DNA of 64,000 nt from Anthoceros angustus (lineage: Eukaryota; Plantae; Anthocerotophyta). Positions 310-49,655 of the stretch are shown piece after piece (positions within the stretch are counted from its first letter, which is position 1; each line of letters begins with the position of its first letter). The notes below the pieces were generated by a model. It made no database searches and had not been told where the DNA came from. It saw nothing but the letters and a program-made list of their open reading frames with translations. The DNA lies in contig MU008155.1 in the NCBI GenBank assembly GCA_010909165.1, positions 1,984,001 to 2,048,000 of the forward strand, in the 5' to 3' direction. The position numbers were made by a program, and so were the translations under genes.

Positions 310-1230
310 AGCTCCATATGCTATGGAGTGAGTTTGAATGTTCTAAACGGTGGGCTAGCTGAATTGCTGAATGAGATGGTTCAATACACCAAAGGACATA
401 AAGGAGTAGCTCTCCCTTCAAGGTTATGACTGAAAGAGAAGGGCACTAACTGTAGCCTTCAGACCGTGATCTTCGTGTTGGTGTGATAATTCTAATGCTC
501 GTGGTGTAGGGAGAGGGAATGTTGGGTGATGCTAGGGTGGATGCAAACATCAAGAGTGTGTGTGCCTATCTTAGCCCCACCTCAGCATTGACCTCCTTCC
601 AACAATATGGTAAAAGCAAGTCACAAAAACAGCAAAGGTCAGCCGGAATCAATTGGGGAGGTATCAAACTTACAGGTAAACAGACTACTTCATGTTTCAT
701 GTAGTTTGCAAAGACATAGACCCTATTCTAACCGCCACTTCCTGTTTCAGGTGAAGTATTGCGACGGTTGATAGCTCTTTCTCAAGAGCAGGGGATGCGA
801 GAGGTTGCAGGTGTCGTCGAGGATGGCGACCATTGGTGAGGTGGAACCATCACACCACTGTTCCACAAACCTCACGATGCCTTAGCTCTCGCCACTCCCA
901 CGCCGCGCAGCGAGAGAACGGCCGGAACCTCCAAAGACTAGTAAAATTGCTAACAAGGCATGTCCATGCTCCAATGATCGATTGGAGCAAGCTATGTTTG
1001 CAATGGTCATCACCAAGGGATATCTTCTCATTTTTTGATCATTTGACAATATATCTTGTCACTTTTTGATTATTTGACAAGATATCTTACCACTTTTTGA
1101 TCATTTGATAAGATATCTTGTCATATCTGAGTATAAAATGAGAGGTGATATAACAGCTCCTTCACATTTTACGTGATCCTAGAAGTAGTAAATAAATACC
1201 ATCAAGATTGGAATGAAAAGCATGAATGAC

Positions 1231-2870
1231 TCAATTGATACTAGTAGGTCCATCAAGTAGAAAGGATAATACCTCTATGATAGACCACCATTTCCCTGTC
1301 TGAGCAATGGTATACTTTTCTATCCATCCAACTCTTGATGCAAACTTCCGCTTGTTGCGTTTGTGAGAGAATAATTTTGCAAGCACACGATTAACATTTT
1401 GATATCTCAAAATTATAGGGTTACTTGCATTTGGCCTCAAATTAATCTCATGCCACCCCAAATCTCCATAACTAGCTTGTGAATCTCCAATCATCTGCTC
1501 CTGAAATGCTATCAACTCATCCACAGTATGAACCTTCACATCACTCAAATTAAATTTAGGATGAAACAAGCAACGAAACAATGCAGAAACATCCCTTTCA
1601 AACATTCCTACACCATTTCTATAGTCCATGATAACTTTGACCAAATGCAAGGTTGAATTAAAGGCCTTGGAAGTAAGCTCAGCCAAGACACGGTCACCAG
1701 TACTGCTCTCCACGTCATCTCCACTCCCACTTTCTCTGGAGCTGATTGTAGTAGTAGAGGTTGCCAAGTTGCTTTTCTCCGATGGCATGTTCTGTCCCTC
1801 CAAGATGATCTTATCAAGTCTTTCCCCTTCCTTTGTATCAACATTAGTCCTTTCCTTTTCCTCATGTTCAGCTCTTTCCCTTTCCTCATGGTCAGCTCTT
1901 TCCCTTTCCTCATGGTCAGCGCTTTCCCTTTCCTCATGGTCAGCCCTTTCCCTTTCCTCATTTATGGTCAGTTGTTTTCCTTTCCTCCCTATCAATATTA
2001 GTCCTTTCCCAATTCTCCGGTCTGCTCTTTCCCTTTCCTCTGTCACACGAAGTAAGCACTTGAATTCATATAAGCACTTCCTCGACAAACCAAGCAAAAC
2101 AAATCTGGCGGTTATATAGGTGCAAACCGTGAGGGAGGCTACATCGCGCACAAACACACTCTCCCACGAACAACAGCAATTTACACATCGCCTCGGGTCA
2201 TGGCTTTGGCCTCCTCACAACACCCTTGCATTGTATATCTAGAGGACAAGCTATGATCTGAGCTTGTCCTCAGTGGAAGGGTTTATATATCCTAGCCCTT
2301 GGCATCGGCATATTCCTAAGATATCCTATTGGCATCAGCATATACCGGAAATATTTTAAGAATACACTATAATATGCAAGTAGTATGCCAAAGCATATTA
2401 CTTGAGCTTATCCACTTAGCTATTGCTAACCATGTTTAATTAACACTAATCAATGCTTAATTAACATAAGCACCTTAGATTAATTAACAACAATTATTTA
2501 CTTAAAGATAAGTGATTAAATTAATTAATGCTAATCAAACACTAAACCCAAGTGCAGAGATTAGTATCACATGGCATGACACCTCCCTATCAACATTAGT
2601 CCTTTCCCATTCCCCCGGTCTGCTCTTTCCTCCCTGTCAACATTAGTACGTTCTGTTTCCTCTCTGTCCACATTCCTTCGTTGAGCATTCTGACATCTAA
2701 AGCTATTGTGCGTATTTTTTTATCTGATATTGGAGACAATCCCACACCTCCATCATGCACATATAACTTTGAGGCAGACCCTAGATGCGATGTTATACGC
2801 TCAGAGCTCAAATTTTCATTTTGTCAATGACATTGCAACCATTGTTGTTGATCAATGCATGAAAAGATAA
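1231..2870 (-). pseudogene. Plavaka/CACTA-like transposase remnant, interrupted by a solo LTR
   Basis: GWHEINL..IILRYQNVNRVLAKLFSH..F..YTIAQTGKWW resembles the Plavaka N-terminal Y(R)..v...LF..p.F and TG.WW motifs. 24-bp EERERADH repeats at ~1845-1965. Reading continues across the LTR at 2041-2581. Confidence 0.45.
2041..2581. mobile_element. Solo LTR (TGTCA...TGACA) with 4-bp TSD CCTC
   Basis: Starts tgtcacacga and ends ggcatgaca. CCTC at 2037-2040 and 2582-2585. Degraded copies at ~4120-4640 and 4861-5338. Confidence 0.8.
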
Positions 2871-5800
2871 TGAATAGAGAAGTGTCAGTGACCGCGTCCT
2901 GAGTGTGTGGAATGGAGCATAGTAATGGACTTGTGGCTCAAACGCTATCCCCGACTCCGGACTCTCGCGTCAAGAATGGTCGGAGGTGGTCTTGTGTTCA
3001 TGACTTATCCTCGGAGGAGGAGGGAAGCCGTTGAAGAACAAAACACTTGATTGCAAAATCCGATATAGATTTGGAAGTAACGGAGAGAGGCCTAGTGCTA
3101 TCATGTTGGAAGTAAGGCAAGCCGCATAAGCTATGTTGCAATGGTCATCACCAAGGATATCTTCTCATTTTTGATCATTTGACAATATATCTTGTCACTT
3201 TTGATTATTTGACAAGATATCTTACCACTTTTGATCATTTGATAAGATATCTTGTCATATCTGAGTATAAAATGAGAGGTGATATATGACTCCTTCACAT
3301 TTTCGTGATCCTAGAAGTAGTAAATAAATACCATCAAGATTGGAATGAAAAGCATGAATGACTCAATTGATACTAGTAGGTCCATCAAGTAGAAAGGATA
3401 ATACCTCTATGATAGACCACCATTTCCACTCGAGCAATGGTATACTTTTCTATCCATCCAACTCTTGATGCAAACTTCCGCATTGCGTTTGTGAGAATAA
3501 TTTTGCAAGCACACGATTAACATTTGATATCTCAAAATTATAGGGTTACTTTGGCCTCAAATTAATCTCATGCCACCCCAAATCTCCATAACTGTGAATC
3601 TCAATCATCGCTCTGAAATGCTATCAACTCATCCACAGTGATGAACCTTCACATCACTCAAATTAAATTTAGGATGAAACAACGAAACAATGCGAAACAT
3701 CCCTTTCAAACATTCCTACACCATTTCTATAGTCCATGATAACTTTGACCAAATGCAAGGTTGAATTAAAGGCCTTGGAAGTAAGCCGAACACGGTCACC
3801 AAGATCGCTCTCCACGTCATCTCCACTCCCACTTTCTCTGTGATTGTAGTAGAGGTTGCCAAGTTGCTTTTCTCCGATGGCATCCCTCAAGATGATCTTA
3901 TCAAGTCTTTCCCTTCCTTTGTATCATTAGTCCTTTCCTTTCCTCATGTTCGCTCTTTCCTTTCCTCATGGTCGCCTTTCCTTTCCTTAATTGACTCTTT
4001 CCTTTCCTCATAATTGTGCTTTCCTTTCCTCATATTTTTCCTTTCCTCATTTATGATTGTTTTTTCCTCCCTATCAATATTAGTCCTTTCCCAATTCTCC
4101 GATGCGCTCTTTCCTTTCTACGTACCGAAGTAAGCGCGAATTCATATAAGCACTTCCTCGACAAGCAACCAAGCAAAACAAATCTGTCGCGATTATATAG
4201 GTGCAAACCAATGACGGGAGGAGTAACTTGCACATCGCGCACAAACACACTCTCCCACGAACACGAATTTACACGCCGGAGTCATGGCTTTGGCCTCCTC
4301 CAACACCTGCATTGTATCTAGAGGACAAGCTATGATCGTCCTCGATGGAAGGGTTTATATATCCAGCCCTTGGCATCGGTCCTAAGATATCCTATTGGCA
4401 TCGATATCACGGAAATATTTTAAGAATACACTATAATATGCAAGTAGTATGCCAAAGCATATTACTTGAGCTTATCCATAACAGCTGCTAACCATGTTTA
4501 ATTAACACTAATCAATGCTTAATTAACATAAGCACCTTAGATTAATTAACAACAATTATTTACTTAAAGATAAGTGATTAATTAATTAATGCTAATCAAA
4601 CACTAAACCCAAGTGCAGATTAGTATCACATGGCATGACACCTCCCTATCAACATTAGTCCTTTCCCATTCTCGGCTGCTCTTTCCTCATGTTCGCTCTT
4701 TCCTTTCCTCATGGTCGCCTCTTTCCTTCCTCATGGTCGGCTCTTTCCTTTCCTCATGGTCCCTTTCCTCATGGTCACTCTTTCCCTTCCTCATTTATGG
4801 TCGTTGTTTTCCTTTCCTCCCTATCAATATTAGTCCTTTCCCAATTCCTGCGCTACCGCCTGTCAAGACGAGAAGACTATAAGCACTTCGACAAACCAAG
4901 CAAAACAAATCCACTGGAGATATAGGTGCAACAGGAGGGTAGCTTGCACATCGCGCACAAACACACTCTCCCACGAGAACAACAATCTGGCCTGGCTCCT
5001 CACAACACCTTGCATTGTATCTAGAGGACAAGCTATGATCGAGCTGTCCTCGATGGAAGGGTTTATATATCCTAGCCCTTGGCATCGGCATATTCCTAAG
5101 ATATCCTAAGCACGCGCACAGGATTTTAAGAATACTATAATATGCAAGTAGTATGCCAAAGCATACTTGAGCTTATCCACTTAGCTATTGCTAACCATGT
5201 TTAATTAACACTAATCAATGCTTAATTAACACCTAGATTAATTAACAACAATTATTTACTTAAAGATAAGTGATTAATTAATTAATGCTAATCAAACACT
5301 AAACCCAAGTGCAGAGATTAGTATCACATGGCATGACACCTCCCTATCAACATTAGTCCTTTCCCATCTCTGCCTCGCTCTTTCCTCCCTCAACATTAGT
5401 ACGTTTGCTTCTCTGTCCACATTCCTTCGTTGAGCATTCTGACATCTAAAGCTATTGTGCGTATTTTTTTATCTGATATTGGAGACAATCCCACACCTCC
5501 ATCATGCACATATAACTTTGAGGCAGACCCTAGATGCGATGTTATCTGCTCAGGAGCTCAAATTTTTCATTTTGTCAATGACATTGCAACCATTGTTGTT
5601 GATCAATGCATGAAAAGATAATGAATAGAGAAGTGTCACAGTGACCGCGTCCTCGGAGTGTGTGGAATGGAGCATAGTAATGGACTTGTGGCTCAAACGC
5701 TATCCCCGACTCCGGACTCTCGCGTCAAGAATGGTCGGAGGTGGTGCTGTGTGTTTCATGACTTATCCTCAGAGGAGGAGGGAAGCCGTTGAAGAACAAA

Positions 5801-7225
5801 ACACTTGATTGCAAAATCCGATATAGATTTGGAAGTAACGGAGAGAGGCCTAGTGCTATCATGTTGGAAGTAAGGCAAGCCGCATAAGCTAGCTGTCGTA
5901 GGGTTTGACTGAAAGGCCTTAAGCCTTCAAAAACGGCAGCTGGAAAGGAAGGTGATGGGCACCTCATGAACTCAAGTTTCTTACGGACCCTATTGAAACT
6001 AGGGTTTAATGCAACCTCCCTACATACTCGAACAAGCATTCAAGCCCAAGTTACACCCATATAGAGCTGGAAAAAACGGGCGTATTGCAGGCTTAACCAA
6101 CACGGAACATCTGCGGTTCAAGAGAGGCTGCGTGTATTCTCCTGTGAATTGGGTGAAGGTGACCTTCGCTAGCCAGCCCTCCATCGATTGCACTTGGCGA
6201 ACAAGTGTGGATTCTCTGTTTACTAGTGGAATTATTGCTTGGCTTTTTGAGATTGACAGTCTTTGCCATTCCTTTTACGTTGCCCAAACCATGGCAAGCA
6301 AATGGTGAAGCAAAAAGGACCTCCTTGACGCCGACCCGAACCCTAGTGACTTGGTGGAGAAGCCACGGAGGCAGAAGAAATCGAGGAGCAAGAAAGATGC
6401 AAAAGCAACAGCCGAAGAACCTCCCGACAAATAGCGGTCACTGCCTCTGGGGCTGGCCATTCTTTGCAACCAGTAGAGCACGGTGGCAGGGGAAGAGGGA
6501 GGGGGCAGATAATGTCCGGGTCGCTCAATTCTGCGAAGGCAAGCACAATAAAGATAGCGGGAGGCGGTGGAGAGAAATCTGGCTTGTCGAAAGCCACAAA
6601 GGCAGGAAATCCAGATCCAAACCCCTCCCCATACACATATGAGGAGACGGTGTAGCTGCGGAGGCACACGAACCAAATTGAAGACAATGTGTTTTTGAAG
6701 GAGGATTGGATTTTGGCACAAACTGAGGAGCCGGAAGAAGAGACTGTGGTGTGGACGCCTATGCTAAAGCTTTGGATTTTTGGGTACAACGGTGCACTTC
6801 CAAACCAAGGGCAAGGGCAAGGTGGGTTTTCTGGGCAACTTTGAATGCAGGGCAAGAAGATGCAAAACTCTGGCTTCTTTGCACCTCACGGCCTTATGAA
6901 GTCGAAGCTTTGGCGTTAACGTTAGATGATTATAGTGCTTATAGTGGCCTGCTTCCACAGCAAGAAATGTGAACCTAAGGAATTGTCAACTACTTTCCGA
7001 GAAGTTTTACGAGCACATAATGTTAGTATCCATCTTTCTTGTGTTGCAGTAGTCAACTTGCTTTGATGCAGGTGTCACAATCTAACAGTGTGATTGATGT
7101 TTGTTATGGCCAGAGTGGAAGAACAATTTACAGAAGTTTGTGTGAGGTGAGTTTATTGTCAGCTACCGTCGAGAGATGTTCTTGAGGAGGACAAGACAAG
7201 GACTTCCAAACTTTGCTATGGATAT

Positions 7226-25517: not shown

Positions 25518-27287
25518 GGCGAGCGGGAGCCCGGGACGCAGGCCACAAAAGCGGCAGCAGCAGCCCTACCAGCGATGGCCAGCAGGCCGCATGGCTGCCG
25601 AGCAGGCGGCACAGAAACAAACAGACAGATGCTGCGAGGCCACCACGGAGGCGCAAGGTCCAGCAGCCTCCAGGCACGCACCAGGTTTGGCACTTCTCAG
25701 CCCAAGCCGATAGAGGGGTCAGGCGGCACCTGGCATCCACCTTCGTACTATGTACCAAAATAGATAACTTTTTATATTTATTTTTCAATGTCATTCGCTT
25801 ACGCATTTACAGTAATTCGTATCACGTTATACAAATTAATATTTATCAAACATTTTCATTCAATACAAAATATTAAAAACCTTTCTGTATCTTTTAGATA
25901 TTATCTCGAATCTTTTTTTGAATCAATTTACTATCCACTATTTTCTCTTCCTCTTTATATTTATTCATCACTCACTCACTTATATCCATCACATCGCGAC
26001 AGGGTCACTTCCGAGATACAAGCCTTGGCTTATCTGGAACGCGGAGCAGGATGCGGAAAAGGTAAGGACTCAGGGCCTGGTAGGTCCTGCGGATGATTGG
26101 CAACGACAGGAGCGGGACACCATGGAACCCTCTGCTAGCTCAGTGATCCCCGTGCCTGCTTTGGGCCTCCCCATTGTTCACCGGGTTCTCAGCCGGAGGC
26201 TATATGATGAAGGAGCTCTGAGACTGCGCTTGTGCATCAATGGGGGCAATCCGTAGTCTGTTCTCTTGTTGTCGCAGTGTTACAGCCCTGACCGGCGAGC
26301 GGCAGTCACGGCTCTGAGGTATGTCACGAGGAGCCTGCCGACACCGGTTCGCCGCCGCGCTCTCATCAGCGGCGGCAGATCCTGATGAAGGAGGAATCGT
26401 AGGAGACGCATGTGAGCTGCGGCTGGTGCTGCTGCAGGAGCTCGGGCTCAGAGGTGGTTCAGGGTTGGATTGGTCCCGAAGCATGGCCCGGGGCCTTGAG
26501 CTGGGAGGTGACCTCCTCCTTCACCCCGATGCAGAGCTGGTTGGAGCCGGAGAGGTCTCCAGAATGCGGCTTCCAAGGTTGGCCAAGCAATTCGTGCGAC
26601 GTGTACCTTTTAAGGCTTTGTCACTCTTTTCCACTTCGCACAAACTGCCTGCATTCAAGCAAACAGGATGAGACTACAGCCCTGATATTGCAAAGAGCGG
26701 CTGAGGATACATACAGCCCAACCAACACAAAAATAATTAGGCACCTTTTGACTTGTCACCGAGAACCGGAGTGCCTGTAGGTCCATCCCAGTCCTTGCAA
26801 ATCCATTTCGAACGTCAAGGCTTGATCAACGAATTGTGACAAGGGTCTCTGCATCCCAGAATCCGCATCTTTTGAAGGCGTCTCGGCTTGCAAACCTGCA
26901 GTGGCATCATCGACACGCGAATCCTTGCTGGATTCAGCAAAATCCAGGAAGGATTCCAGCTTGCAAACATCATGCCTCTTGACGTTCGACAAATACGAGT
27001 TCCTCCGAGTGCCTGACCCGCAAGCAGTCACTTCTGCTGTATCAAAACCCTCGATCTTGTGCTGCCACCCCTCTCGATTCTAGTGAAATACAATCACTTG
27101 TCTCACGACGACTTCGTAGTAGTACTTTCCAGATGCTGCACCTTCCGGGCGGACAACACGCCCGGCTTCTGCCCCAGCCAGCAGTGTTAGCCATCCATGA
27201 CTCATTTTGGACAGGGATGGAGTTGTGCAAGCACTTCACCGCGAAAGCAACATTCTCTGGCGTACACACTTGAGCACTGGCTACTTC

Positions 27288-29673
27288 TCACGGTCGACCC
27301 TTACAACTGCAACAACCAGCTGCGAATCGATGCACACGGTACCCATCCCTTACAACAATGTTTCTCTGTTCAATCCTTGACATGATCTCCGTGGAACTGT
27401 GGCAGTCACTGCACATGCGCAGATTCTTTGTTACCACCAGAGGTGTCCCTCTAGGCGTGTTCAAGAGACCAAATGCCAAAGCTAGCTTCTCAGCATGCCC
27501 ACAAAGCACATCTTCCTTTTGCTTCTCACACAGAGGCTTCAACACCAACTTTGTGTGAGGTACGTGGCCTCCTTCCTGCTTCAGACGAGCATTCGTGCTC
27601 TCTACCTTCAGCGCAATATCCTCTCTCTTTTCTCCCACCAGAAACCTATGTACCTCCTGATTCACCTCAATGGTCGCCACTGCAGGTTTCTTGTTAGCTC
27701 CTGCTACCCTTCTCTGTGTTTCCATCCTGTCTACATCGGTCCACCTACCTGCATCTGCAAAGGCATTGGCCATGAGCACATAGGCGGGCGCCTCCTGGGG
27801 GTCCAACCTAACAATGCTTTCAAAACACCAAATCGCCCTCTCTATATCTCCGTGATTTTTGCAGGCATTCAACAAAGACGTCAATCCCACAACATCACTT
27901 TGGCCATTGCATGATAGTAGCATCTTCTCTGCCTCATCTAAATGGCCTGCACGCCCAAGAAGATCAATCATGCAATTGTAATGCTCAATACTAGGCTTGA
28001 TGCCATGCTGTTCAGTCATGGAATCAAAGTGCTTACGACCCTCGTGGACCAGTCCCCCATGACTGCATGCTCCTAAAACGCAAGTAAAAGTAGCCTCATT
28101 AGGCTGAATACCGGCAACCAACATCTCCTCAAAACAAGCTAGTGCCTTGTGACCTTCATCACAAGTACCATACCCAGATATCAGGGCAGTCCATGTCACT
28201 ACATCCTTTGTATACATGCTGTCAAAAACCTGGCGTGCATCTTCCAGTTCACCACATTTTGCATACATGTCCACCAGGCAGTTGCCAACAACGTTATCCA
28301 CCAGTCCTCTTTCAACAATCTGTGAGTGCAGCTGCCTGCCCTTCTGTAAGGAACCAGTGCTTGCGCAGGCCTTCAGAAGGCAAGAAAAAGTAAAATGGTT
28401 AGCCAAAATGAGGCCTCCTGCTCCATTTGTCCATACAACAAGCGCCTCTTGGCGAGTCCTTGCTGTGCATACCCAGCAATCAGGGCATTCCATGTCACCA
28501 CATCCTTTGTGTTCATGCTGTCAAAAACCTGGCGTGCATCTTCAGTTCACCACATTTTGCATACCCAGCAATCAGGGCATTCCATGTCACCACATCCTTT
28601 GTCCCCATGTTGTCAAAAACCTGGCGTGCATCTTCCAGTTTGCCACATTTTGCATACATGTCCACCAGGCAGTTGCCAACAAACAAGTTAGTAGGAATGC
28701 CACTGTGCAACACATCACAGTGCACTTTTCTGCCAGATTCCAAGTCGGCGGCCAATGCACAAGCTTGAAGGGCAGCTACAAAGACGTGACCATTCGCCTT
28801 CACTCCTGACCTACGCATCTCATGGTACAGTTGTATGGCCTCATTAGGTTTCCCATGCTTAGCGTATGCGGAGATTATGGAAAACCACATGAAGGCATCT
28901 GGTTTGCCCACCCTGGTGAACACATCCATGGCCTCCTCTAGCCTACCTCCACATGCATACATGCGCAAGATATGGTTCCCCAAGAATGCATTCGAATCGT
29001 ACCCAAGTTTGACAGTGAGATCATGAACTCGTCGCCCCACAATGAAATCCCTCTTATCTGTACACAGTTTCAGCACAGTGTAAAACAGAGACTGAGAAAT
29101 GGCAGAGTCTGTCTGCGCCAGAGATTCCAGGGCTCCAACCGCCTCAGAAAGATTCCCCTGCTGACATAACATGCTCACGGTTCCAGCCGTTACGGCGCCC
29201 ATTACCGAACCTTCGTGCCTGCCAGGTTCAGGCTTGTCCGGAGAGCTCGACTTGGAAGGAGAGGCACCATGACCCATCTCCATATCCAAGGAAACGAGCT
29301 GCTCATCAACCCAAGCTGGCTTAGACATGCTGTTTAACCACAGGACCTCGCCGGACCCCTTACGCCGGAAGTCAGGCGAACGGGAGCTCTTCTTATCTAG
29401 TCTGTTGTCCCACCACATGGTAGGGTCCAGGAAAAATTGTTGCCACAAGTGCTCCTGCTCCTGGCCACGAGCATCACGGGAACATCCGTCCCCACCCACA
29501 CATTTCATCAGAGGTGTAAGTGCTGGGCTCCTTAAGCTGCTGCACCTGAAGGCTAGGCTGTTTGCCGGGAGTTGACTCCATAATGTGAGGCGAGCGGGAT
29601 CTCCTCGTCGAATCCCTGCATACCAACCAATTTGTTCGGTCCACAGCAGGTCCGGTTGCCCTACTGTGGCCAT
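27288..29673 (-). pseudogene. PDF-motif + PLS-PPR-E-DYW:KP (GRP) protein, disrupted at ~28440-28600 (pseudogene or assembly error)
   Basis: Paralogue of 32208-34811. Ends KKPAVATIEV...HAEKLA...MCSDCH...CSCKGRP. ORFs 27288-28493 and 28513-29748 are out of frame, and a chimeric [10 protein letters not shown] junction marks a lost repeat block. Confidence 0.85.
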
Positions 29674-30083
29674 CGTCCAGGGACCGCTATGGGAAGATGT
29701 GTCCAACAACAAACTACGGTAGGATGCCCAGATCCTGAGTATGACCACACCATACGGGCTGGCTCCGATGAGCTCGAACTCGGAGGGCTTCCATCAAACA
29801 ATCAAACCGGAAAATGGCATGGGAACTCGTTACTTTTCCAAAGCGAATCCTGGATAAGCTTGAGTCATACCTTAAGTTGAGTCATACGTTGTGTACATTG
29901 CGGCTTCCAAAGTTCCAACGTTCCAACCCGGACTGTAGAGCTATGTATGTAAATACATCTGTAAATATATGTATAGATATAGGTATAATATATAAAAATA
30001 ACATATATAATTATATTACAATTTTATTACTCCAACTTCTCTATGTTTCAACAGGCTTATCATATTGATTTTTGATTTGTTAG

Positions 30084-32034: not shown

Positions 32035-32207
32035 AAGTGTGTTTCTTCCCTTGTACCCACTAAAATATCATCTGCACTATCCTTTTGTCATGCTCACTAC
32101 TACCCTGGTGTGGTCATACACACTCCTACCCAACTTGAACATCTTCTCATAGGTGCAATAGGTACTTTTTTGTTTTAGACTCATCTTCCGAAAACGGTCC
32201 TTGAACG

Positions 32208-34811
32208 ATGGCCACAATACGGCAACCGGACCCCTTGTGGACCCAACAATTTGGTTTGTGTACAGCGATTCCACTAGGAGATCCCGCTCACCTTCCTCTG
32301 GGCAGTCAACTCCCGGCAAACAACCAAGCCTTCAGGTGCAGCAGTGTAAGGAGCCCAGCACTTCCCCTTCCGAGAAAAGGTGTGGGTGGGGATGGATTTT
32401 CCCGCGATGGTCGTCGCCAGGAGCAGGAGCACTTGTGGCAGCAATTCTTTCTGGACCCTACAATGTGGTGGGACAACAGACGAGAGACGAAGAACTCGCG
32501 TGGGCCTGACTTCCGGCGTAAGGGGTCCGGCGAGGTCCTGTGGTTAAACAGCATGTATAAGCCAGCTTGGGTTGACGAACAGCTCGTTTCCTGGGATATG
32601 CAGATGGGTCATGGTGCCACTCCTTCCAAGTCCAGCTCTCCGGATAAGCCTGAACTTGGCAGGCGTGCACGATCGGAAATGGGCGTCGTATCGGCTTTGA
32701 CCGTCCGCACGTTATGTCAGCAGGGGAGGCTTTCTGAGGCCGTTGGAGCCCTGGAATCTCTGGCGCAGACAGACTCTATTTCTCAGTCTCTGTTTTACAC
32801 TGTGCTAAAGCTGTGTACAGCTAAAAAGGATTTGGTCGAGGGGCGACGAGTTCATGATCTCACGGTCAAACTTGGGTACGAGTCGAATGCATACTTGGGG
32901 AACCATATCTTGCGCTTGTATGCAGGTGGAGGTATGCTAGAGGAGGCCATGGATGTGCTCACCAGGGTAGGCAAACCAGATGTCTTCATGTGGTTTTCCA
33001 TAATTTCTGCACATGCTAAGCATGGGAAACCTAATGAGGCCATACAACTGTACCATGAGATGCGTAGGTCAGGAGTGAAGGCGGATGCTCACGTCTTTGT
33101 AGCTGCCCTTCAAGCTTGTGCATTGGCCGCCGACTTGGAATCTGGCAGAAAAGTGCACTGTGATGTATTGCACAGTGGCATTCCTCTTAACTTGTTTGTT
33201 GGCACCTGCCTGGTGGACATGTATGCAAAATGTGGTGAATTGGAAAATGCACGCCAGGTTTTCGACAGCATGGCCACGAAGAATGTGGTGATCTTGAATG
33301 CCTTGATAACTCAGTATGCCCAGCAAGGGCTCGGACATGAGGCGCTTGTTCTCTATGGCCAAGTGGAGCAGGAGGGCCTCATTTTGGCTGACCATGTTAC
33401 TTTTGCTTGCCTTCTGAAGGCCTGTGCAAGCACTGGTGCCTTACAGAAGGGGATGCAGCTGCACTCACAGATTGTTGAAAGGGGACTGCTGGATGACGTG
33501 GTGCTGGGTAACTGCCTGGTGGACATGTATGCAAAATGTGGTGAACTAGAAGATGCACGCCGGGTTTTTGAAAGCTTGGCCAGAAAGGATGTGGTGACAT
33601 GGACGGCGCTAATTGCTGGGTATGCACAGCAAGGACTCGGCCATGAGGCGCTTGTTGTGTATGGACAAATGGAGGAGGCGGGCCTCATTTTGGCTGACGC
33701 TGTAACTTTTGCTTGCCTTTTGAAGGCCTGTGGAAGCACTGGTGCCTTACAGAAGGGCAGGCAACTGCACTCGCAGATTGTTGAAAGAGGACTGCTGCAT
33801 AACGTAGTGTTGGGCACCTGCCTGGTAGACATGTATGCAAAATGTGGTGAACTGGAAGATGCACGCCAGGTTTTTGACAGCATGAACACAAAGGATGTGG
33901 TGACATGGACCGCCCTGATATCTGGGTATGGTACTTGTGATGAAGGTCAGAAGGGGCTAGCTTGTTTTGAGGATATGTTAGTGGCCGGAATTCAGCCTAA
34001 TGATGCTACTTTCACTTGCCTTTTAGTAGCATGCAGCCATGAGGGACTGGTCCACGAGGGTCGCAAGCACTTTGATTCCATGGCTGAACATTATGGCATC
34101 CAACCTAGTATTGAGCATTACATTGGCATGGTTGATATTCTTGGGCGCGCAGGCCATCTAGACGAGGCAGAGAAAATGCTATTATCATGTGGGGGCCAAA
34201 GTAATGTTGTAGGGTTGACGACTTTGCTGAACGCCTGCAAAAGTCATGGGGATATAGAGAGGGCGATGTGGTGTTTCGAGAGTCTGGTTAAACTAGATCC
34301 CCAGTACACGCCCGCATATGTGCTCATGGCCAACACCTTTGCAGATGCAGGTAGGTGGACAGATGTAGACAGGATTGAAACACAGAGACTGGTAGCAGGA
34401 GCTATCAAGAAACCTGCAGTGGCGACCATTGAGGTGAACAATGAGGTACATAGGTTTCTGGTGGGAGACAGGAGAGAGGATATTGCGCTTAAGGTAGAGA
34501 GCACGAATGCCCGTTTGAAGCAGGAAGGAGGCCACGTACCTCACACGAAGTTGGTGCTGAAGCCCGTGTGTGAGAAGGAAAAGGAAGATGTGCTTTGTGG
34601 GCATGCTGAAAAGCTAGCTCTGGCGTTTGGTCTCTTGAACACTCCAAGCGGGACACCTCTGGTGGTAACGAAGAATCTACGCATGTGCAGTGACTGCCAC
34701 AGTTCCACGGAGATCATGTCAAGGCTCGAACACAGAGACATTGTTGTTAGGGATGGGTACCGTGTGCATCGATTTGCAAACGGTTGTTGCAGTTGTAAGG
34801 ATCGACCGTGA
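32208..34811 (+). CDS. Intronless PLS-class PPR protein with N-terminal OSB-type PDF motif and E-DYW:KP (DRP) domain; candidate U-to-C organellar RNA editing factor
   Basis: 867-aa ORF. P-L-S repeats ([29 protein letters not shown]) and E domain. KKPAVATIEV box, HAEKLA + CSDCH zinc site, C-terminal CSCKDRP. N-terminal LWQQFFLDPTMWWDNRRETKNSRGPDFRRKGSGEVLWL. Confidence 0.95.
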   Translation: MATIRQPDPLWTQQFGLCTAIPLGDPAHLPLGSQLPANNQAFRCSSVRSPALPLPRKGVGGDGFSRDGRRQEQEHLWQQFFLDPTMWWDNRRETKNSRGPDFRRKGSGEVLWLNSMYKPAWVDEQLVSWDMQMGHGATPSKSSSPDKPELGRRARSEMGVVSALTVRTLCQQGRLSEAVGALESLAQTDSISQSLFYTVLKLCTAKKDLVEGRRVHDLTVKLGYESNAYLGNHILRLYAGGGMLEEAMDVLTRVGKPDVFMWFSIISAHAKHGKPNEAIQLYHEMRRSGVKADAHVFVAALQACALAADLESGRKVHCDVLHSGIPLNLFVGTCLVDMYAKCGELENARQVFDSMATKNVVILNALITQYAQQGLGHEALVLYGQVEQEGLILADHVTFACLLKACASTGALQKGMQLHSQIVERGLLDDVVLGNCLVDMYAKCGELEDARRVFESLARKDVVTWTALIAGYAQQGLGHEALVVYGQMEEAGLILADAVTFACLLKACGSTGALQKGRQLHSQIVERGLLHNVVLGTCLVDMYAKCGELEDARQVFDSMNTKDVVTWTALISGYGTCDEGQKGLACFEDMLVAGIQPNDATFTCLLVACSHEGLVHEGRKHFDSMAEHYGIQPSIEHYIGMVDILGRAGHLDEAEKMLLSCGGQSNVVGLTTLLNACKSHGDIERAMWCFESLVKLDPQYTPAYVLMANTFADAGRWTDVDRIETQRLVAGAIKKPAVATIEVNNEVHRFLVGDRREDIALKVESTNARLKQEGGHVPHTKLVLKPVCEKEKEDVLCGHAEKLALAFGLLNTPSGTPLVVTKNLRMCSDCHSSTEIMSRLEHRDIVVRDGYRVHRFANGCCSCKDRP

Positions 34812-35526
34812 GAAGAGGTAGCTAGTGCTCCGCCAGAGAATATTGCTTTCAGGGTGAATGAATGGGCATGGATTGCTAACTCGTCTGAAGGCTTGCGATC
34901 TAGCTGGGTCACGGAGCCTGGCGAGCCCGGGCAGCTGTAGGAGATCAGGGATCGGGGCCTGGTGCAGACATGGAAATTGGCTCAGATCCGGTGGATCCCC
35001 CTTTCACTCCACCCATCCTCAGGTGTGCTTCCCCTAACCTTGTGTATAGTTGCACCTTTTCACATTTGGACGTTGAAAAAGAACCCCTAAGTAAAGGAGT
35101 CCGAGACGCTTTGGACTCTTACAACAACCTCTAAGTTAGGTAGTCTCAAATGGGTCAGGAAGTCCCAAACAGCCCTACCCAATGCCAATGCTAACAGGTG
35201 ATATATCAGGGTAGCATAAACCTACATACTGTGTAATTATGTATAAAATTAAGACTCAAAAGGAAGACCGCGCCAGTCTTTCGTAGAGTCCTGATCGGTC
35301 CACCATATGTAAGCCCACCCAAGTCTACTCTCACTCGAGTTCTCAACTCTTTTGTGAAGCCGGCTAGCAAAATCCTTACTGAAAGCCTCGAATGCTCTAA
35401 CGCCAGCAGACATTCAAGACTTCCCTATAGATGTGTTAAGAGATTCTAACATACAGTAACCCTTCCCTGGAATTCCGGCTACGGGATAAGGAGAGGACGA
35501 ACAGTGGTACCCCAGCCGATCTCATT

Positions 35527-42632: not shown

Positions 42633-44014
42633 ATGGGGAAGGCAGCTGCTGCCGTGGTGTGGCTATGGAGGTTGGCGCTGCTGCTGCTGGCGCTCCAGAT
42701 GTGCCTCGTGCAGGCTCACGTGGGGCACGACCACGGAGACGAGCAGGAGAACGGCGATGCGGAGGCCGCGGTGGCGGCGGATGGTCACGACCTCCGCAGG
42801 AAGGGGCTGGTGCTGGTGAAGATATACGCCCTCATCATCGTCTTCTTCGCCACCTTCATCCCTGGCATCTCCCCCCAGTTCCTCCGCTGGGACGAGTCCT
42901 TCCTGGTCCTGGGAACGCAGTTCGCCGGAGGCGTCTTCCTGGCCGTGTCCGTAATTCACTTCCTCCCGGACTCCGATGCCACCTTCAAGACGCATTCCGG
43001 CAAGAAGTACCCCTTCGCCTTCATGCTGGCCTGCGTAGGGTTCTTGATCACGCTGCTCGCGGATGCCGTCATCCTGTCGGTGTACGGCAGGGCCGATCGG
43101 AAGCAGCAGGCTGCGGGATCCGACTTGGAGAGCAGTAAAGTTTCAGGTAGGCAGCTCAAATTGCAAGCGCTTTAATGACTGGTGTGCCTTGCATTTGTGG
43201 CTGAACTTGCCCTTGGATCATCCGGCTTGAATTTGCGCAGACGGCAAGGATACTGGTGGCCCGAACGAGTGGAAGGTGAGTGAGTGAAAAGCGTTGAGCA
43301 AGTTGTCCGTTTTCTCCGAGTTTTTCAACAGCCTTGTTGGCCAGTGCTGCAGTTAGCCTCACTTGCAGTGCCGCTTGCAAGATCAGGCTGAGGAGGATCA
43401 CGGCAAGCCAGCAAGGGGTCTGGCAGCGGTTCCCAAGGCTTCATATGGAGATGCGATGCTCCTCATCTTCGCTTTGTGTTTCCACTCGGTGTTCGAAGGC
43501 ATAGCCATCGGGATTGCACGTGAGTCTTAACTTCTTAGCTTTCGCGCACCAGTCTCGTCTGAGATGCCGGCAATAGCAATCAAATTACTCATGGCTTTGA
43601 CATTCCTGCTTCATGGATGCAGCTACTGAAAAGGAAGCATGGAAAGCTTTATGGACAGTGAGTTTGCATAAGGTGTTTGCTGCTATAGCTATGGCCATCG
43701 CGCTACTGCGGGTACTGCCGGAACGGCCACTTCTTTCCTGCGCCAGCTATGCCTTCGCCTTCGCCATCTCCTCGCCCATTGGTGTGGCGATTGGGATCCT
43801 CATCAATGCCACAACTGAAGGGGCAACGGCGGACTGGATTTATGCCATCTCCATGGGCCTTGCCACTGGAATTTTCATCTATGTGGCAATCAACCATCTC
43901 TTGGCCAAGGGATACAGGCCGGAGGGCAAGCTTGCGGCGGATAATCCCTTCCTCAAGGTTCTGGCAGCCACACTAGGGGTTGCAGTTGTTGCTGTTGTTC
44001 TAATCTGGGACTGA
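42633..44014 (+). CDS. ZIP-family zinc transporter (ZIP2/ZIP11-like), multi-exon
   Basis: Signal peptide + HVGHDHGD. Motifs [57 protein letters not shown] and [16 protein letters not shown]. Ends LIWD*. Confidence 0.95.
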
Positions 44015-44436: not shown

Positions 44437-45442
44437 ATGGGTGGTGTCCTGTCCGCCTGCGGCCTGTGGAGGAGAAAGCGGGGCCCAAAGCAGCAGTCCC
44501 GGCTGAGCAGCTCTGCACAGGATAACGGGGATGTGGCTGCAGCCGGTGTGGGTGGGTCAGAGGCCTCCGTAAGAAGGAGGCGGCCAGTAGAAACGGAGAT
44601 GCGGGCCTTCAAAGAGAGATCGCCAGAAACAGGTGCTACTTGGCTTGCCCTTCCAGCATTAAAAAATTTCAGTCTGTCTGATCGAATTTGGTCATTTAAT
44701 GGCGTGAGTGTCATGTCCAGAAGCACCTCCCTCAAGATTTCAGAGCTGGCACAACTGGCTGTTTAGTTTGAGGATAAGTAAACCGTGGACAAACAGTTCT
44801 AAGAGCCTAAAGCCAGTTCCACCTGTTACTATATTACAAAATAACGCTGCCTACAAGAGCCTCAGCAGAGCCGAACAAGTTGCTTCGGAGGGTCATATGC
44901 TTATACAAGATGTCTTCCAATCTGTTGCATCATTGGAGAAGTGTTACATGTCACAATACATTCAAGTGGCGCCTGCAGACGATCCATACATAAGGACCGT
45001 GACACAGTGGAGTGAAGCTAATAAAACTAGCATGTTGGATAACTTTGCCCATATTTCAAAGCTGAAAGCGGAGTACATGGACAAGCTTTGCCAAAGAGGA
45101 GGGTCTGCAGAGTTCTCTCTACCACGTTCTCTGACTAATCCTTTCGATCAGGTGACGGTGAAAAGAAGAGTTGCTCAACTGGAGAATGTGATCGCTGTAA
45201 AGGATACTGAAATCAGGCTATTGAAAGAAAAATCTAAAAACGATATAGAGAATCATAAGCGTGTGCTTTTCCAGCTATCCAAAACTTTACAACAGATGGA
45301 GTCTGAAAAGAAGAAAGTTGAAGACAAGCTCCTCTCGAAGACAACACATGAAGATGCCGAGGATCCTCGCACTAGAATTATCCAAGAAGAGGTAGAAAGA
45401 CCACAACATAGGCTATCAGAGATTGAAGAAGTGAAAGAATGA
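44437..45442 (+). pseudogene. Frameshifted coiled-coil gene, DUF641/GIL1/IRK-interacting-like; degraded continuation possibly to ~46300
   Basis: Overlapping ORFs 44437-44766 and 44708-45442. LIQDVFQSVASLEKCY...PADDP...ISKLKAEY and LENVIAVKDTEIRLLKEK resemble DUF641. Downstream frames are broken. Confidence 0.45.
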
Positions 45443-46772
45443 GATGCTGTGTCAATGCCAACATGGATGCGCACTGGATCCAGTACATCTGGTCTCACTC
45501 GCTCGACGTATCAGATACCCTGCGTCCATATGCACAAGCATGAGATGCTGTGTCAATTTCAGAACTCTAGTAAAACACACGATTTTGTAGAGTTTTCATC
45601 GAAACGGTCGTACTCGTGTTGGAAAACGCGTGCGTGGAAATCTTTCAAGTTCCTATCCCTCGCTATGATGTCCCTCGCATATCCTGTGCATCTATTCTCA
45701 CTGTCATAGGCCGCTGCACAAAAGCAAGTGCCCAGTTCTCCCCTAAGCCTTGTTGACATCAGCAGTTTGGGAACTGAAAGTGCGCTACCTCAATAGGAGC
45801 ATTGATTGATGGCCTTGGGCAAGACAAAAGCAGCCCTCGGCAAAGTTCTCAGTCTTCTTGCTTTTACTTGTCAATCTGTGGATTCACCAAAACAGATTCT
45901 TGACCTCCACCCCTCTCCTTCTGGATTGTACACCATTACTTGCACATTCACCCCTCCTTGTGATGCAGATAGACCAACACCGTCGGTCCTGAAAATGGAT
46001 AAACATTTTCTTTGTCACACGTCAATACCACACAAGGCAGCTGGTGCACTGTACAGCAATCACTGTATGATCCAACTCCTAGACTGTGTGGAATGAAGAA
46101 AACACCAGGTATACTGGAACGTCACAAGGTGTCAGATTCTTTGTGATGAACTTACTTTTACATGACACCGAACATTTCCTCTACGAGCTGTTGCAAATTG
46201 TCGTCAAACGACGTGATCCTCCTGTTTTTGGCTCGGAACTTTGGGTCCGCTATTTGAAGAGGCCGTTCATACCTCAGCGCAACATCTGCCACACAATCAA
46301 ACCCTAGCGTTTCTTGCACTATCAGGTTGCACAGAAACTCGGGTTTTGAGCGACAATCCCCTTGCGGACCTCAGACACAGAGGTGCAAGATCCAGGAAAA
46401 GCGACGGCGAGAAGGAGATCAGTCATGCCACGCTCTGCCTCCTCCCTTATGCTCTGCAGCTCGTTCAACAGGCTCTTCGTTGCCCAGATTCTCCATGAAC
46501 AATTGTTCCCTAGTTCTCGCATTGGCAAAGTTGCAATGACCCCGGAAGATAGTTGTGTCGATGCTCTCAAATTCGGCTCTGACAAACGCGCGTGGGAGGC
46601 GTGTACCAGCTGCGGGAGTTTTTTCCCCTGCACTTCAGCATTCCAGATGAATTGCTGATGCCGTGATGGAGAGGCACAGACTGAGTGCTGACGCTGGCGC
46701 AGGCCATAGCGTGTGCACAATCCATCGACCTCCTCAATGCCTCCACTGTCGATGTGTTAACTAATACGGCGT

Positions 46773-46920
46773 CACCAGCCGCCTACAAAGTTTGAGCGTC
46801 GCGGGCTTGGGGAGCCGCATGAGCAGCAGCAGGAAGGCAAGAGCACGCTCTGCTTCCGCCAACGGGTGCGGCAGAGCGTGGGAGGGAGCAACCGGAGCCG
46901 GGTCGGCTGTGCTGCGGGCG
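46773..46920 (+). pseudogene. Duplicated fragment of exon 1 (transit peptide) of the FIP-like gene at 52285
   Basis: gcgggcttggggagccgcat...gctctgcttccgccaacgggtgcgg.agagcgtggg matches ~52370-52516. Confidence 0.85.
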
Positions 46921-46943
46921 GCCCTAACCGATGGCCTAATCGG

Positions 46944-47040
46944 GCTGATCGACAGCCATTAGGCTCGGCCTGAACGACAGCCATAAGGCTTGGCCTGATC
47001 GACAGCCATTATGCTTGGCCTGATCGACAGCCATTAGGGC
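46944..47040. repeat. 4 x 25-bp tandem repeat
   Basis: Unit ggcctgatcgacagccattaggctt with minor variants. Confidence 0.85.
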
Positions 47041-47192
47041 CAGCCGGGGCAATCAGGCCATATTGAGCAGGCAATGGCCTGATTGCCATCGCCTGATGAA
47101 CCTGTCCAGTACCAGGCAGGCATCTCGGTGAGATCCAGGACGCGATCAGGCAGCCTAACCCAGCAGCGGCATCCAGCCAGCCCAGGCCCTCA

Positions 47193-47217: not shown

Positions 47218-47523
47218 AATTCGCTTCTCCTTCTGAAAAAACTCGAAAAGTTTAGAGAAGGGCTTTTCGGCTCGTCGTCCCGATCGGTATGCCATTGAAT
47301 ATCGCATTATGCCAAGGCCAAGGGCTATATGTAGTGCTCCTCCACAGTGTCTTGTGTTCTCATTACATATGTAAGAAGAGGTAAGAAGAGGCACTACCCG
47401 TTAGAGGACGGGAGACAATGCCACAAGTTTCTTTCTGGCTAGCTTCTCCCCCTTAGGGCCGTGGCCTTGGGCGTTGGCTGTGGTTCCTTCGTCTCAAGCA
47501 GCGTAGTAGGGGTTGAAGTTAGA

Positions 47524-49166
47524 ATGGCAGCGTCCAGCAGAGGCGATGGTGGAAAATCTGCTGGAGAGCGTTGGTACTCCAAATGTTACTTCAAATGCTT
47601 CTCGCTCTGTTGCTGGGATCCAAAGACGCAGGAATCCTTTTCTGCGACTAATTCGGCAAGTCCAGTCCAGTTGAATGGTAATCGGCATCACACGCAGGAC
47701 GAAGTTGGGGACAAACCTGTATGTGATGAAGAGCTTCCGGAAATCGTCGAGCGGTATAAGAAGGAGCCATCTGCTACTGCATGCATCTTTTGTAAGGGAA
47801 TTGTTCGTTCTTCCAGTAATGAGAGTCAGAGACTTGAAGAATTGGAGTCCATGTCTGGAAACCAGCTGAGGCACGAGCTTCGAAGAAGTGACATAGATAT
47901 TTCCTGGTGCCTGGAAAAGAGAGACTTCGTGCAGGTGCAGAATCTTGTTTCTGCTGTTTGCTGGCAATCGGACTGTTGCGAGCTGCTGAAGCTTTCGTGT
48001 ACGCGGACTTTGGATTGTGGACATCGCTGCGGAGGAGTTCGAGCAGAAATTACTTGCCTTCCCTGTCTAGAGGTGATTGTGCTATCCCGAATGACACCTG
48101 TGGACTCTCTTTTTCATGGCATGTCTACAACTCATGTGACGCCCTTTCCTACTTTCCCCAGGCTGGCTGTTACTCAAATTCAGGTGCTGGTCAGAAGGTC
48201 TTCACATCCGGGGACAACCTGTGTCCCGTATGTATGGATCCTGTTAATCGAGCCCCTGCCATACTGCTGACTTGTGGGCATGTGGTGCACGCGCACTGCA
48301 CAAAGAGGAAGATTGATGCGGGGTTTCCAGGCCCCGAAATCAGCTTCACTTTCCTCGAGTGTGCACTATGTTCCCAGGTCATGCAGCATCCGTATTTGCA
48401 GCCTCATGCGATAAAGCATGAGAAGATGAGAGAGCTGGTAGGACATGAATGACAATAGTCTAGAGGATGTACACTTTCTTTGGTGGACATTATAATACCC
48501 GCTCAATCTTAAAGAAAACCTCAGCTTGAGATATTTGGCTCTGTAGGTTAAGGAAAAGCTAGAAGAGCGGCTCAAGTTCGAGCAATCAAACGAACAGCGG
48601 CCGAAGTCGAAGGCAGACAAGTTGGCGGTAGAGCCGAAGGTAGAAGAAGTAACAGAGGAGTTGGTGATTGCTGCCATGAAGGAATATCTGTACTACGTGT
48701 GCTTTAAGTGCAAGGAGCCATATTTTGGTGGTATTCGCAACTGCGGAGGGCGGAACGAAGGGTGCGTGCTGGGCAAAAACACGTCACTTTTTCTTCTTTT
48801 TGATTCAACATCGTCTGGATCTTATTAGCTTGTACCAATGATACTTGATTGTGCAGGGAAGACGGTGTTGATTCGCGCGAGCTTATGTGTGGCAGTTGTA
48901 TTGCTGCCGCAAATGGCGAAGGAATTTGTACGGTAGAAGGCCATGGGAGCGCATACATACAATACAAGTGCAGATATTGCTGCAGCATGGCTACTTACGT
49001 ATGCGAGTATGGAACACGTCACACTTGTACCTCTCACACGGATTGGGAGTCGTGGATTCCTGAGCCGTGTCTAGGTGTTGAGTATTGCGGTTTGGGGATC
49101 GAACATGCCCCAAATGGCCAAGAGTTTTGCCTTGGCTGTTCTCTCTGTCGTACCAGAGGCGAATAA
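47524..49166 (+). CDS. Stand-alone MYCBP2/PHR-like RING-Cys-Relay E3 ubiquitin ligase (~449 aa; exons 47524-48072, 48162-48437, 48547-48761, 48857-49166)
   Basis: Colinear with the MYCBP2 C-terminus: CTRTLDCGHRCGGVRAEITCLPCL; RING CPVC...APAILLTCGHVVHAHC...GPEISFTFLECALC; AMKEYLYYVCFKCKEPYFGGIRNC; DSRELMCGSC; HGSAYIQYKCRYCCSMATYVC; HAPNGQEFCLGCSLCR. Three GT-AG introns give an uninterrupted 1350-nt frame. Confidence 0.9.
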
Positions 49167-49533
49167 TAATATTTGCGCTCTCAGGTTCCGGTATTCTCTG
49201 TCGTAGCAAAGGCCAATAACAATGGTACCTAAGGATGATGGAAAATTCGTTCAGAAGGATCAGATAACACGTCACTACTGAGTCAGTCACAAGCGCTGTG
49301 GAAGGTAACACACCCTGAGTAGCAGTTGCCAGATCTAACGCAGACAGAATAACAGAAGTAGGAGCGAGCCCTGTACTTCCATTGCCTCTATGAGCAGCGA
49401 TAGTAGTTGCCAAAGCCGTTGACTGAGTACTGGCAATCGCTGCAGCAAAGGCAGGATTATGATTTGCAACTGTGGCAAGCAAGTTGGGTGAATGGATGCG
49501 AAATACATCCAAGGCCTCATCGGCCAACCATCT

Positions 49534-49655
49534 TGCCATTTGCTCAAAGGCAAACTGCGGAGTAAAAGCAGCACCATGCCGCAAACGCAGTTCCTGCCAT
49601 TTGCTCAAAGGCAAACTGCGGAGTAAAAGCAGCACCATGCCGCAAACGCAGTTCC
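49534..49655. repeat. Exact 61-bp tandem duplication
   Basis: tgccatttgctcaaaggcaaactgcggagtaaaagcagcaccatgccgcaaacgcagttcc occurs twice. Confidence 0.9.

Follow-up and report, generated by a model that had tools for sequence, protein, structure and literature searches.

A RING-Cys-Relay gene copy with an altered acceptor-site motif in Anthoceros angustus and its RING1-IBR-RCR relatives in land plants

The 64-kb stretch of Anthoceros angustus DNA analysed here (the window) carries, at positions 47524-49166 of the forward strand, a gene related to the RING-Cys-Relay (RCR) module of the animal ligase MYCBP2; we refer to it as the RCR copy, and its parts are listed in Table 1. Four exons joined by GT..AG introns give 1350 nt, or 449 codons and a stop codon, with no internal stops, just as the sequence-only reading had proposed, and the GC content resembles that of the surrounding sequence. 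The start codon was taken as the first in-frame ATG 3′ of an upstream in-frame stop; that stop, and the finding of no Pfam family in exon 1, bear out the further proposal that the RCC1/PHR/DOC scaffold of MYCBP2 is lacking. Searches, structure models, and trees each took one exon of the spliced model at a time.

Table 1. Parts of the RCR copy, in window coordinates.
Feature	Coordinates	Strand	Description
Exon 1	47524..48072	+	183 codons; ~70 residues unmatched in orthologues, then CxxC, helix pair, and MYCBP2-type pre-RING zinc finger
Intron 1	48073..48161	+	89 nt, phase 0, GT..AG; position common to Selaginella, Diphasiastrum, and Ceratodon
Exon 2	48162..48437	+	RING-H2 with MYCBP2-type extension
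Intron 2	48438..48546	+	109 nt, phase 0; position common to moss and lycophytes
Exon 3	48547..48761	+	Linker helix, first CxxC of tandem-cysteine domain, mediator loop
C341 codon, equivalent of upstream relay cysteine C4520	48742..48744	+	TGC; alignment to 5O6C
Intron 3	48762..48856	+	95 nt, phase 2; position common to moss and lycophytes
Exon 4	48857..49166	+	Remaining tandem-cysteine domain and stop codon
C396 codon, equivalent of downstream relay cysteine C4572	49002..49004	+	TGC; alignment to 5O6C
Altered acceptor-site motif	49005..49037	+	One extra residue between C396 and C404, then C-T-S-H replacing C-x-x-C-H

The copy is surrounded by a patchwork of gene pieces, around which no transposon terminal repeats were found. 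On its 5′ side lie the end of a ZIP transporter (43613-44014), a 244-aa open reading frame with a weak match to DUF641 that is below the cut-off (44708-45442; E 2.7e-5), a reverse-strand fragment that looks peptide-deformylase-like by eye and has no Pfam match (46158-46319), and an 86% copy (46768-46920) of the 5′ coding part of an expressed gene 5.6 kb away (52285-52617), which adjoins a 25-nt tandem repeat at 46942-47063. The last codons recur, nearly unchanged, as 29 nt directly 3′ of the stop codon (49142-49223), and a 61-nt tandem duplication lies further downstream (49531-49652). Elsewhere in the window, 27235-29713 and 32169-34858 form an inverted duplication of about 89% identity over 2.5 kb, and there are other local duplications at 989-5891.

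The MYCBP2 RCR structures (PDB 5O6C and 6T7F) are the best or sole PDB match for each of exons 2, 3, and 4 (E 4.9e-11, 5.4e-5, and 1.5e-13, respectively), and the last part of exon 1, encoding the pre-RING zinc finger, aligns with an insect MYCBP2 over 41 aa (54%). Both relay cysteines are present, as had been claimed: the counterparts of C341 and C396 in 5O6C are positions 143 and 195, which we take to be C4520 and C4572 on the assumption that the chain begins at residue 4378. A zinc-free model of exon 4 folded alone (pLDDT 84), guided by canonical homologues in its alignment, matches only RCR structures in Foldseek (TM 0.71), and 6T7F is the sole chain of 48,161 to which it scores a Z of 2 or more (Z 9.1), in keeping with the proposed structural likeness to the MYCBP2 module. 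The match to MYCBP2 far exceeds chance. In the RING-H2, all eight zinc ligands are kept, loop 1 is one codon short, and the proline of the last CPxC is replaced by alanine; one transcript of a paralogue, described below, has three extra letters at 48234, the place of the missing codon. Exon 1 also contains a helix pair (residues about 100-147; window 47824-47965) that is kept in green-lineage members and has a weak SAP/LEM-like shape, with marginal matches to Pfam ARMET_C and SAP_RNF34_RFFL (E about 0.06, in single members only) and a Z of about 4 for the exon-1 model. Nearer the N terminus, at 47584-47620, there is a Cys-rich stretch with four Cys in eleven residues, which might be either a site for a lipid anchor or what remains of an IBR end.

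The sequence-only reading described the match to MYCBP2 as holding motif by motif, and this stands for the domains, their order, and the relay cysteines, but not for what follows the second relay cysteine. There, the near-invariant C-x-x-C-H is C-T-S-H in the copy, within a stretch (C-E-Y-G-T-R-H-T-C-T-S-H) that has gained one residue before its second Cys and lost one conserved Cys after it. The strict motif C-[FWY]-G-x-x-H-[FMYL]-C-x-x-C-H is found in 140 of 170 homologues, Cxx[CH]H is kept in 166 of the 170, and the 6/2 spacing in 158 of 164; the Cys absent from the copy is conserved in 97% of homologues, and none of the 170 shares the altered motif. A few natural homologues have CxxHH, with His in place of that Cys. 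The copy has shifted or replaced the aromatic residues that adjoin the catalytic Cys and precede the next Cys.

Two length changes near C396 cancel, leaving a distance of 11 from C396 to H407 that equals the distance from C4572 to H4583. C4579 and C4582 of MYCBP2 bind zinc, and H407 can be aligned in two ways: to H4583 if a gap is allowed, or, ungapped, to C4582. In MYCBP2, H4583 is an essential active-site histidine and a possible general base (PMC7615817), and the preference for Thr is due to a hydrophobic pocket (PMC9527308). Under the gapped alignment, H407 would be the equivalent of H4583 and a zinc ligand would be missing; under the ungapped one, H407 would take over from that ligand and the catalytic histidine would be missing. 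The unchanged Cys-His distance leaves room for function, and may place H407 for catalysis. We class the copy as an RCR-derived variant rather than a proven RCR enzyme, because a defining motif, C-x-x-C-H, was looked for and is altered. We doubt that it is a normal stand-alone ligase esterifying Thr/Ser as MYCBP2 does: although both relay cysteines, the full set of RING ligands, the histidine 11 residues after C396, and the tandem-cysteine fold of the exon-4 model are as such an enzyme would have them, and MYCBP2 catalysis resides in its 30-kDa RCR module (PMC9527308), the copy is missing a nearly universal Cys, its neighbouring aromatics are displaced, the supporting model is zinc-free and built from a canonical-homologue alignment, and same-sample contigs hold no transcript of it. 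The earlier proposal of ester-linked ubiquitination by the copy is weakened by the altered acceptor motif and the missing transcript.

Land-plant orthologues, including Selaginella XP_024530918.1, Diphasiastrum KAJ7534242.1, and Ceratodon KC19_2G009400, are 624-691 aa long and bear an RBR-type RING1-IBR half at the N terminus; they align to the window from about residue 270-320, leaving the copy without the first about 270-315 residues. The best matches of this N-terminal half are the RBR RING1 structures of RNF144A and HOIP (E 8e-6 to 6e-4), Pfam IBR is detected in it in some homologues, and the motif at its end, PYHLGx[TS]C, occurs in 59 of 71 near-complete homologues and is absent from the window. 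In four orthologues, residues about 85-320 form an RBR-type RING1-IBR-like half fused to an RCR module that replaces RING2. Neither tblastn nor two profiles found orthologue residues 1-270 in the 64-kb window (best plant-profile E 0.26), and hidden upstream RING1-IBR exons were rejected on the same searches. Because the orthologues carry a half that is missing here, the miniature size of the copy is, by this comparison, a derived loss, which does not support the earlier view of the miniature form as the RCR ligase of this lineage. The segment at 47641-47749 is resembled by a 3,601-nt paralogue transcript and absent from the orthologues, and for this reason the parent gene in the Anthoceros lineage probably has a linker between the IBR and the pre-RING part.

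Exon 4 has matches in 533 clusters formed at 50% identity; many of these proteins are 450-900 aa long, with the domain at the C terminus. Named members come from ferns (Pteridium, Adiantum, and Ceratopteris), lycophytes (Selaginella and Diphasiastrum), mosses (Physcomitrium and Ceratodon), algae (Chara, Chlorokybus, and chlorophytes), and, elsewhere, dictyostelids and other Amoebozoa, diplonemids, Palpitomonas, and animals. This spread across plants, algae, and protists indicates that short RCR proteins are old and common, not peculiar to the Anthoceros lineage. No seed-plant member is among the named matches of these non-exhaustive searches, which fits a loss in seed plants. The distribution might conceivably follow lineages that have flagellated cells, although dictyostelids do not fit this pattern. 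Some members already have database labels ('highwire-like' for Physcomitrium XP_024395653.1 and 'RCR-type E3' for dictyostelid proteins in UniRef), but our literature search, whose returns were partly unrelated papers, found no study describing or testing a plant or protist RCR. The statement that no plant RCR had been characterised holds for the literature searched, and the caution that widespread, described orthologues would lower the novelty applies in its first half: the family is widespread and known from database labels, and no description of a plant or protist member was found in the literature.

The three introns of the copy lie at the same codons and in the same phases as in Selaginella, Diphasiastrum, and Ceratodon, and one Chara gene has none of them. 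In a tree of exon 1, the copy groups with mosses (95/84) within a land-plant clade; a tree of exon 4 did not resolve its position and did not join it to land plants (end branch 0.66). Best matches are land plants for exons 1 and 4, and Chara and a moss for exon 2; for exon 1 (reference 47461-48267, region 22-204), word seeding was insensitive, finding 0 matches where local comparison found 73. No viral relatives of the copy were found. Judging from the intron positions and phases common to moss and lycophytes and the grouping of exon 1 among mosses, the copy is inherited, not transferred; together with the wide family, this upholds the ancestral origin suggested by the sequence-only reading and contradicts its alternative of a horizontal gain from a protist. 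We give almost no credence to such a gain or to a contaminant joined into the assembly. The failure of the exon 4 tree to place the copy with land plants would agree with either, but both are largely refuted by the land-plant introns and the exon 1 grouping, by the best matches, by the GC content and want of viral relatives, and by contigs from the same sample that hold paralogues about 85% identical to the copy and its neighbour gene at 100%.

The same-sample RNA contigs (one shallow set of 29 Mb, its RNA status guessed) contain the neighbour gene at 51704-52950, spliced, and two paralogues that cover the region of the copy at <90% identity, with no transcript of the copy itself among them; such contigs drop rare transcripts, and a missing contig cannot prove silence. 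The read search covered 5,851 letters, and none of the listed sequencing runs contained the stretch. The longer paralogue transcript (3,601 nt) skips all three intron positions and extends about 1.8 kb further 5′, and the shorter (1,415 nt) retains intron 3; the intron 1 site is spliced in both.

Comparison with the transcribed paralogue over 56 codons of exon 1 gives a dS of 0.24, a dN of 0.175, and a dN/dS of about 0.7, a figure based on 28 differences; when changes are polarised, 10 are derived in the copy, 4 in the paralogue, and 4 are unpolarised. Of 28 exon 2 columns that do not vary across other streptophytes, the copy departs at about 9 and each orthologue at 0-4; in exon 4 the copy departs at about 4 of 35, the top of the orthologue range (seven orthologues compared, mosses excluded by the motif filter). 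Neutral sequence at 5-10% divergence has a 0.3-6% chance of remaining stop-free, even ignoring indels. Since dN/dS is high and the changes are mostly on the side of the copy, yet the frame is unlikely to be stop-free if neutral, these comparisons point to constraint that is relaxed, not absent.

We lean modestly toward the view that the RCR copy is a relaxed lineage-specific duplicate with impaired catalytic output. An ancient land-plant RING1-IBR-RCR ligase gene would have been duplicated in this lineage, and the duplicate would have shed its 5′ RING1-IBR half while retaining its reading frame and all three 3′ introns; it would now be evolving fast under relaxed but present constraint. The comparisons show descent, the truncation, and the changed motif; every step of activity is predicted. 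In MYCBP2, ubiquitin passes from a RING-bound E2 to the first cysteine, then by a relay of ~24 A to the second cysteine, and finally to a Thr/Ser ester (PMC9527308, PMC9120709). By homology, and if expressed, the RING of the copy would bind E2~ubiquitin, C341 would form a thioester with the ubiquitin, and the mediator loop would then pass this ubiquitin to C396. The final discharge onto a Thr/Ser hydroxyl, aided by histidine, would most likely be weakened or lost, or changed, because the zinc site holding the loop is without one ligand and pocket residues are altered.

Counting against a relaxed duplicate are the open 449-codon frame, the intact splice sites, and the retention of nearly all zinc ligands and the relay cysteines. 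These invite a different reading, which we regard as rather unlikely though worth keeping in view, that the copy is a re-purposed active ligase: selection would have maintained a subfamily of several shortened copies whose RCR module is freed by the absence of RING1-IBR, the loop rebuilt behind C396 would admit an acceptor of another kind (a different hydroxyl, lysine, or a non-protein substrate), and H407 would act as a base or a substitute zinc ligand. A stop-free frame that is improbable under neutrality, the kept ligands, the preserved C396-H407 distance, and the natural CxxHH homologues, which show that His can replace this Cys, are what re-purposing would predict; the lack of a transcript in same-sample contigs, RING drift greater than in any orthologue, the high dN/dS, and a motif absent from 170 homologues are not. 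In its boldest form, the plant would express a small subfamily of RCR ligases that lack RING1-IBR and have a rewired acceptor loop and new acceptor chemistry, beside a full-length RBR-RCR hybrid parent, a proposal that strikes us as improbable.

MYCBP2 has been described as an animal enzyme, and we found no literature test of an RCR outside animals. A RING1-IBR-RCR protein of 600-700 aa with both relay cysteines is kept in seed-free plants, algae, and many protists, and non-lysine ubiquitination is therefore testable there, for example in Physcomitrium or Ceratopteris. The family merits a biochemical test, and the RCR copy is its weakest intact-looking candidate: it is a poor test case for a plant RCR, for which the full-length paralogue or a moss gene would be better. 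Its value is as a natural acceptor-loop variant for asking what C4582 and H4583 contribute.

The closest relatives of the copy are the plant and protist RING1-IBR-RCR proteins, for which our comparison set also included Ceratopteris, Pteridium, and Chara. Identity is about 40-55% per exon for all matching parts, and the three intron positions and a plant-type helical insert before the pre-RING finger are common to both; land-plant members have the canonical acceptor motif and the N-terminal half, whereas the copy has neither. The RING1 of RBR ligases such as RNF144A and HOIP/RNF31 matches the half found in the orthologues and absent from the copy, which also lacks the RBR RING2/Rcat. With MYCBP2/PAM/Highwire/RPM-1, the copy has in common the order of pre-RING zinc finger, RING-H2, linker helix, and tandem-cysteine domain, both relay cysteines, and the exon-4 fold. 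Unlike these PHR proteins of about 3,800-4,600 aa, it is 449 aa long, without their RCC1/PHR/DOC scaffold and with an in-frame stop upstream of its ATG, and its C-x-x-C-H motif is altered and its RING loop 1 is one residue shorter.
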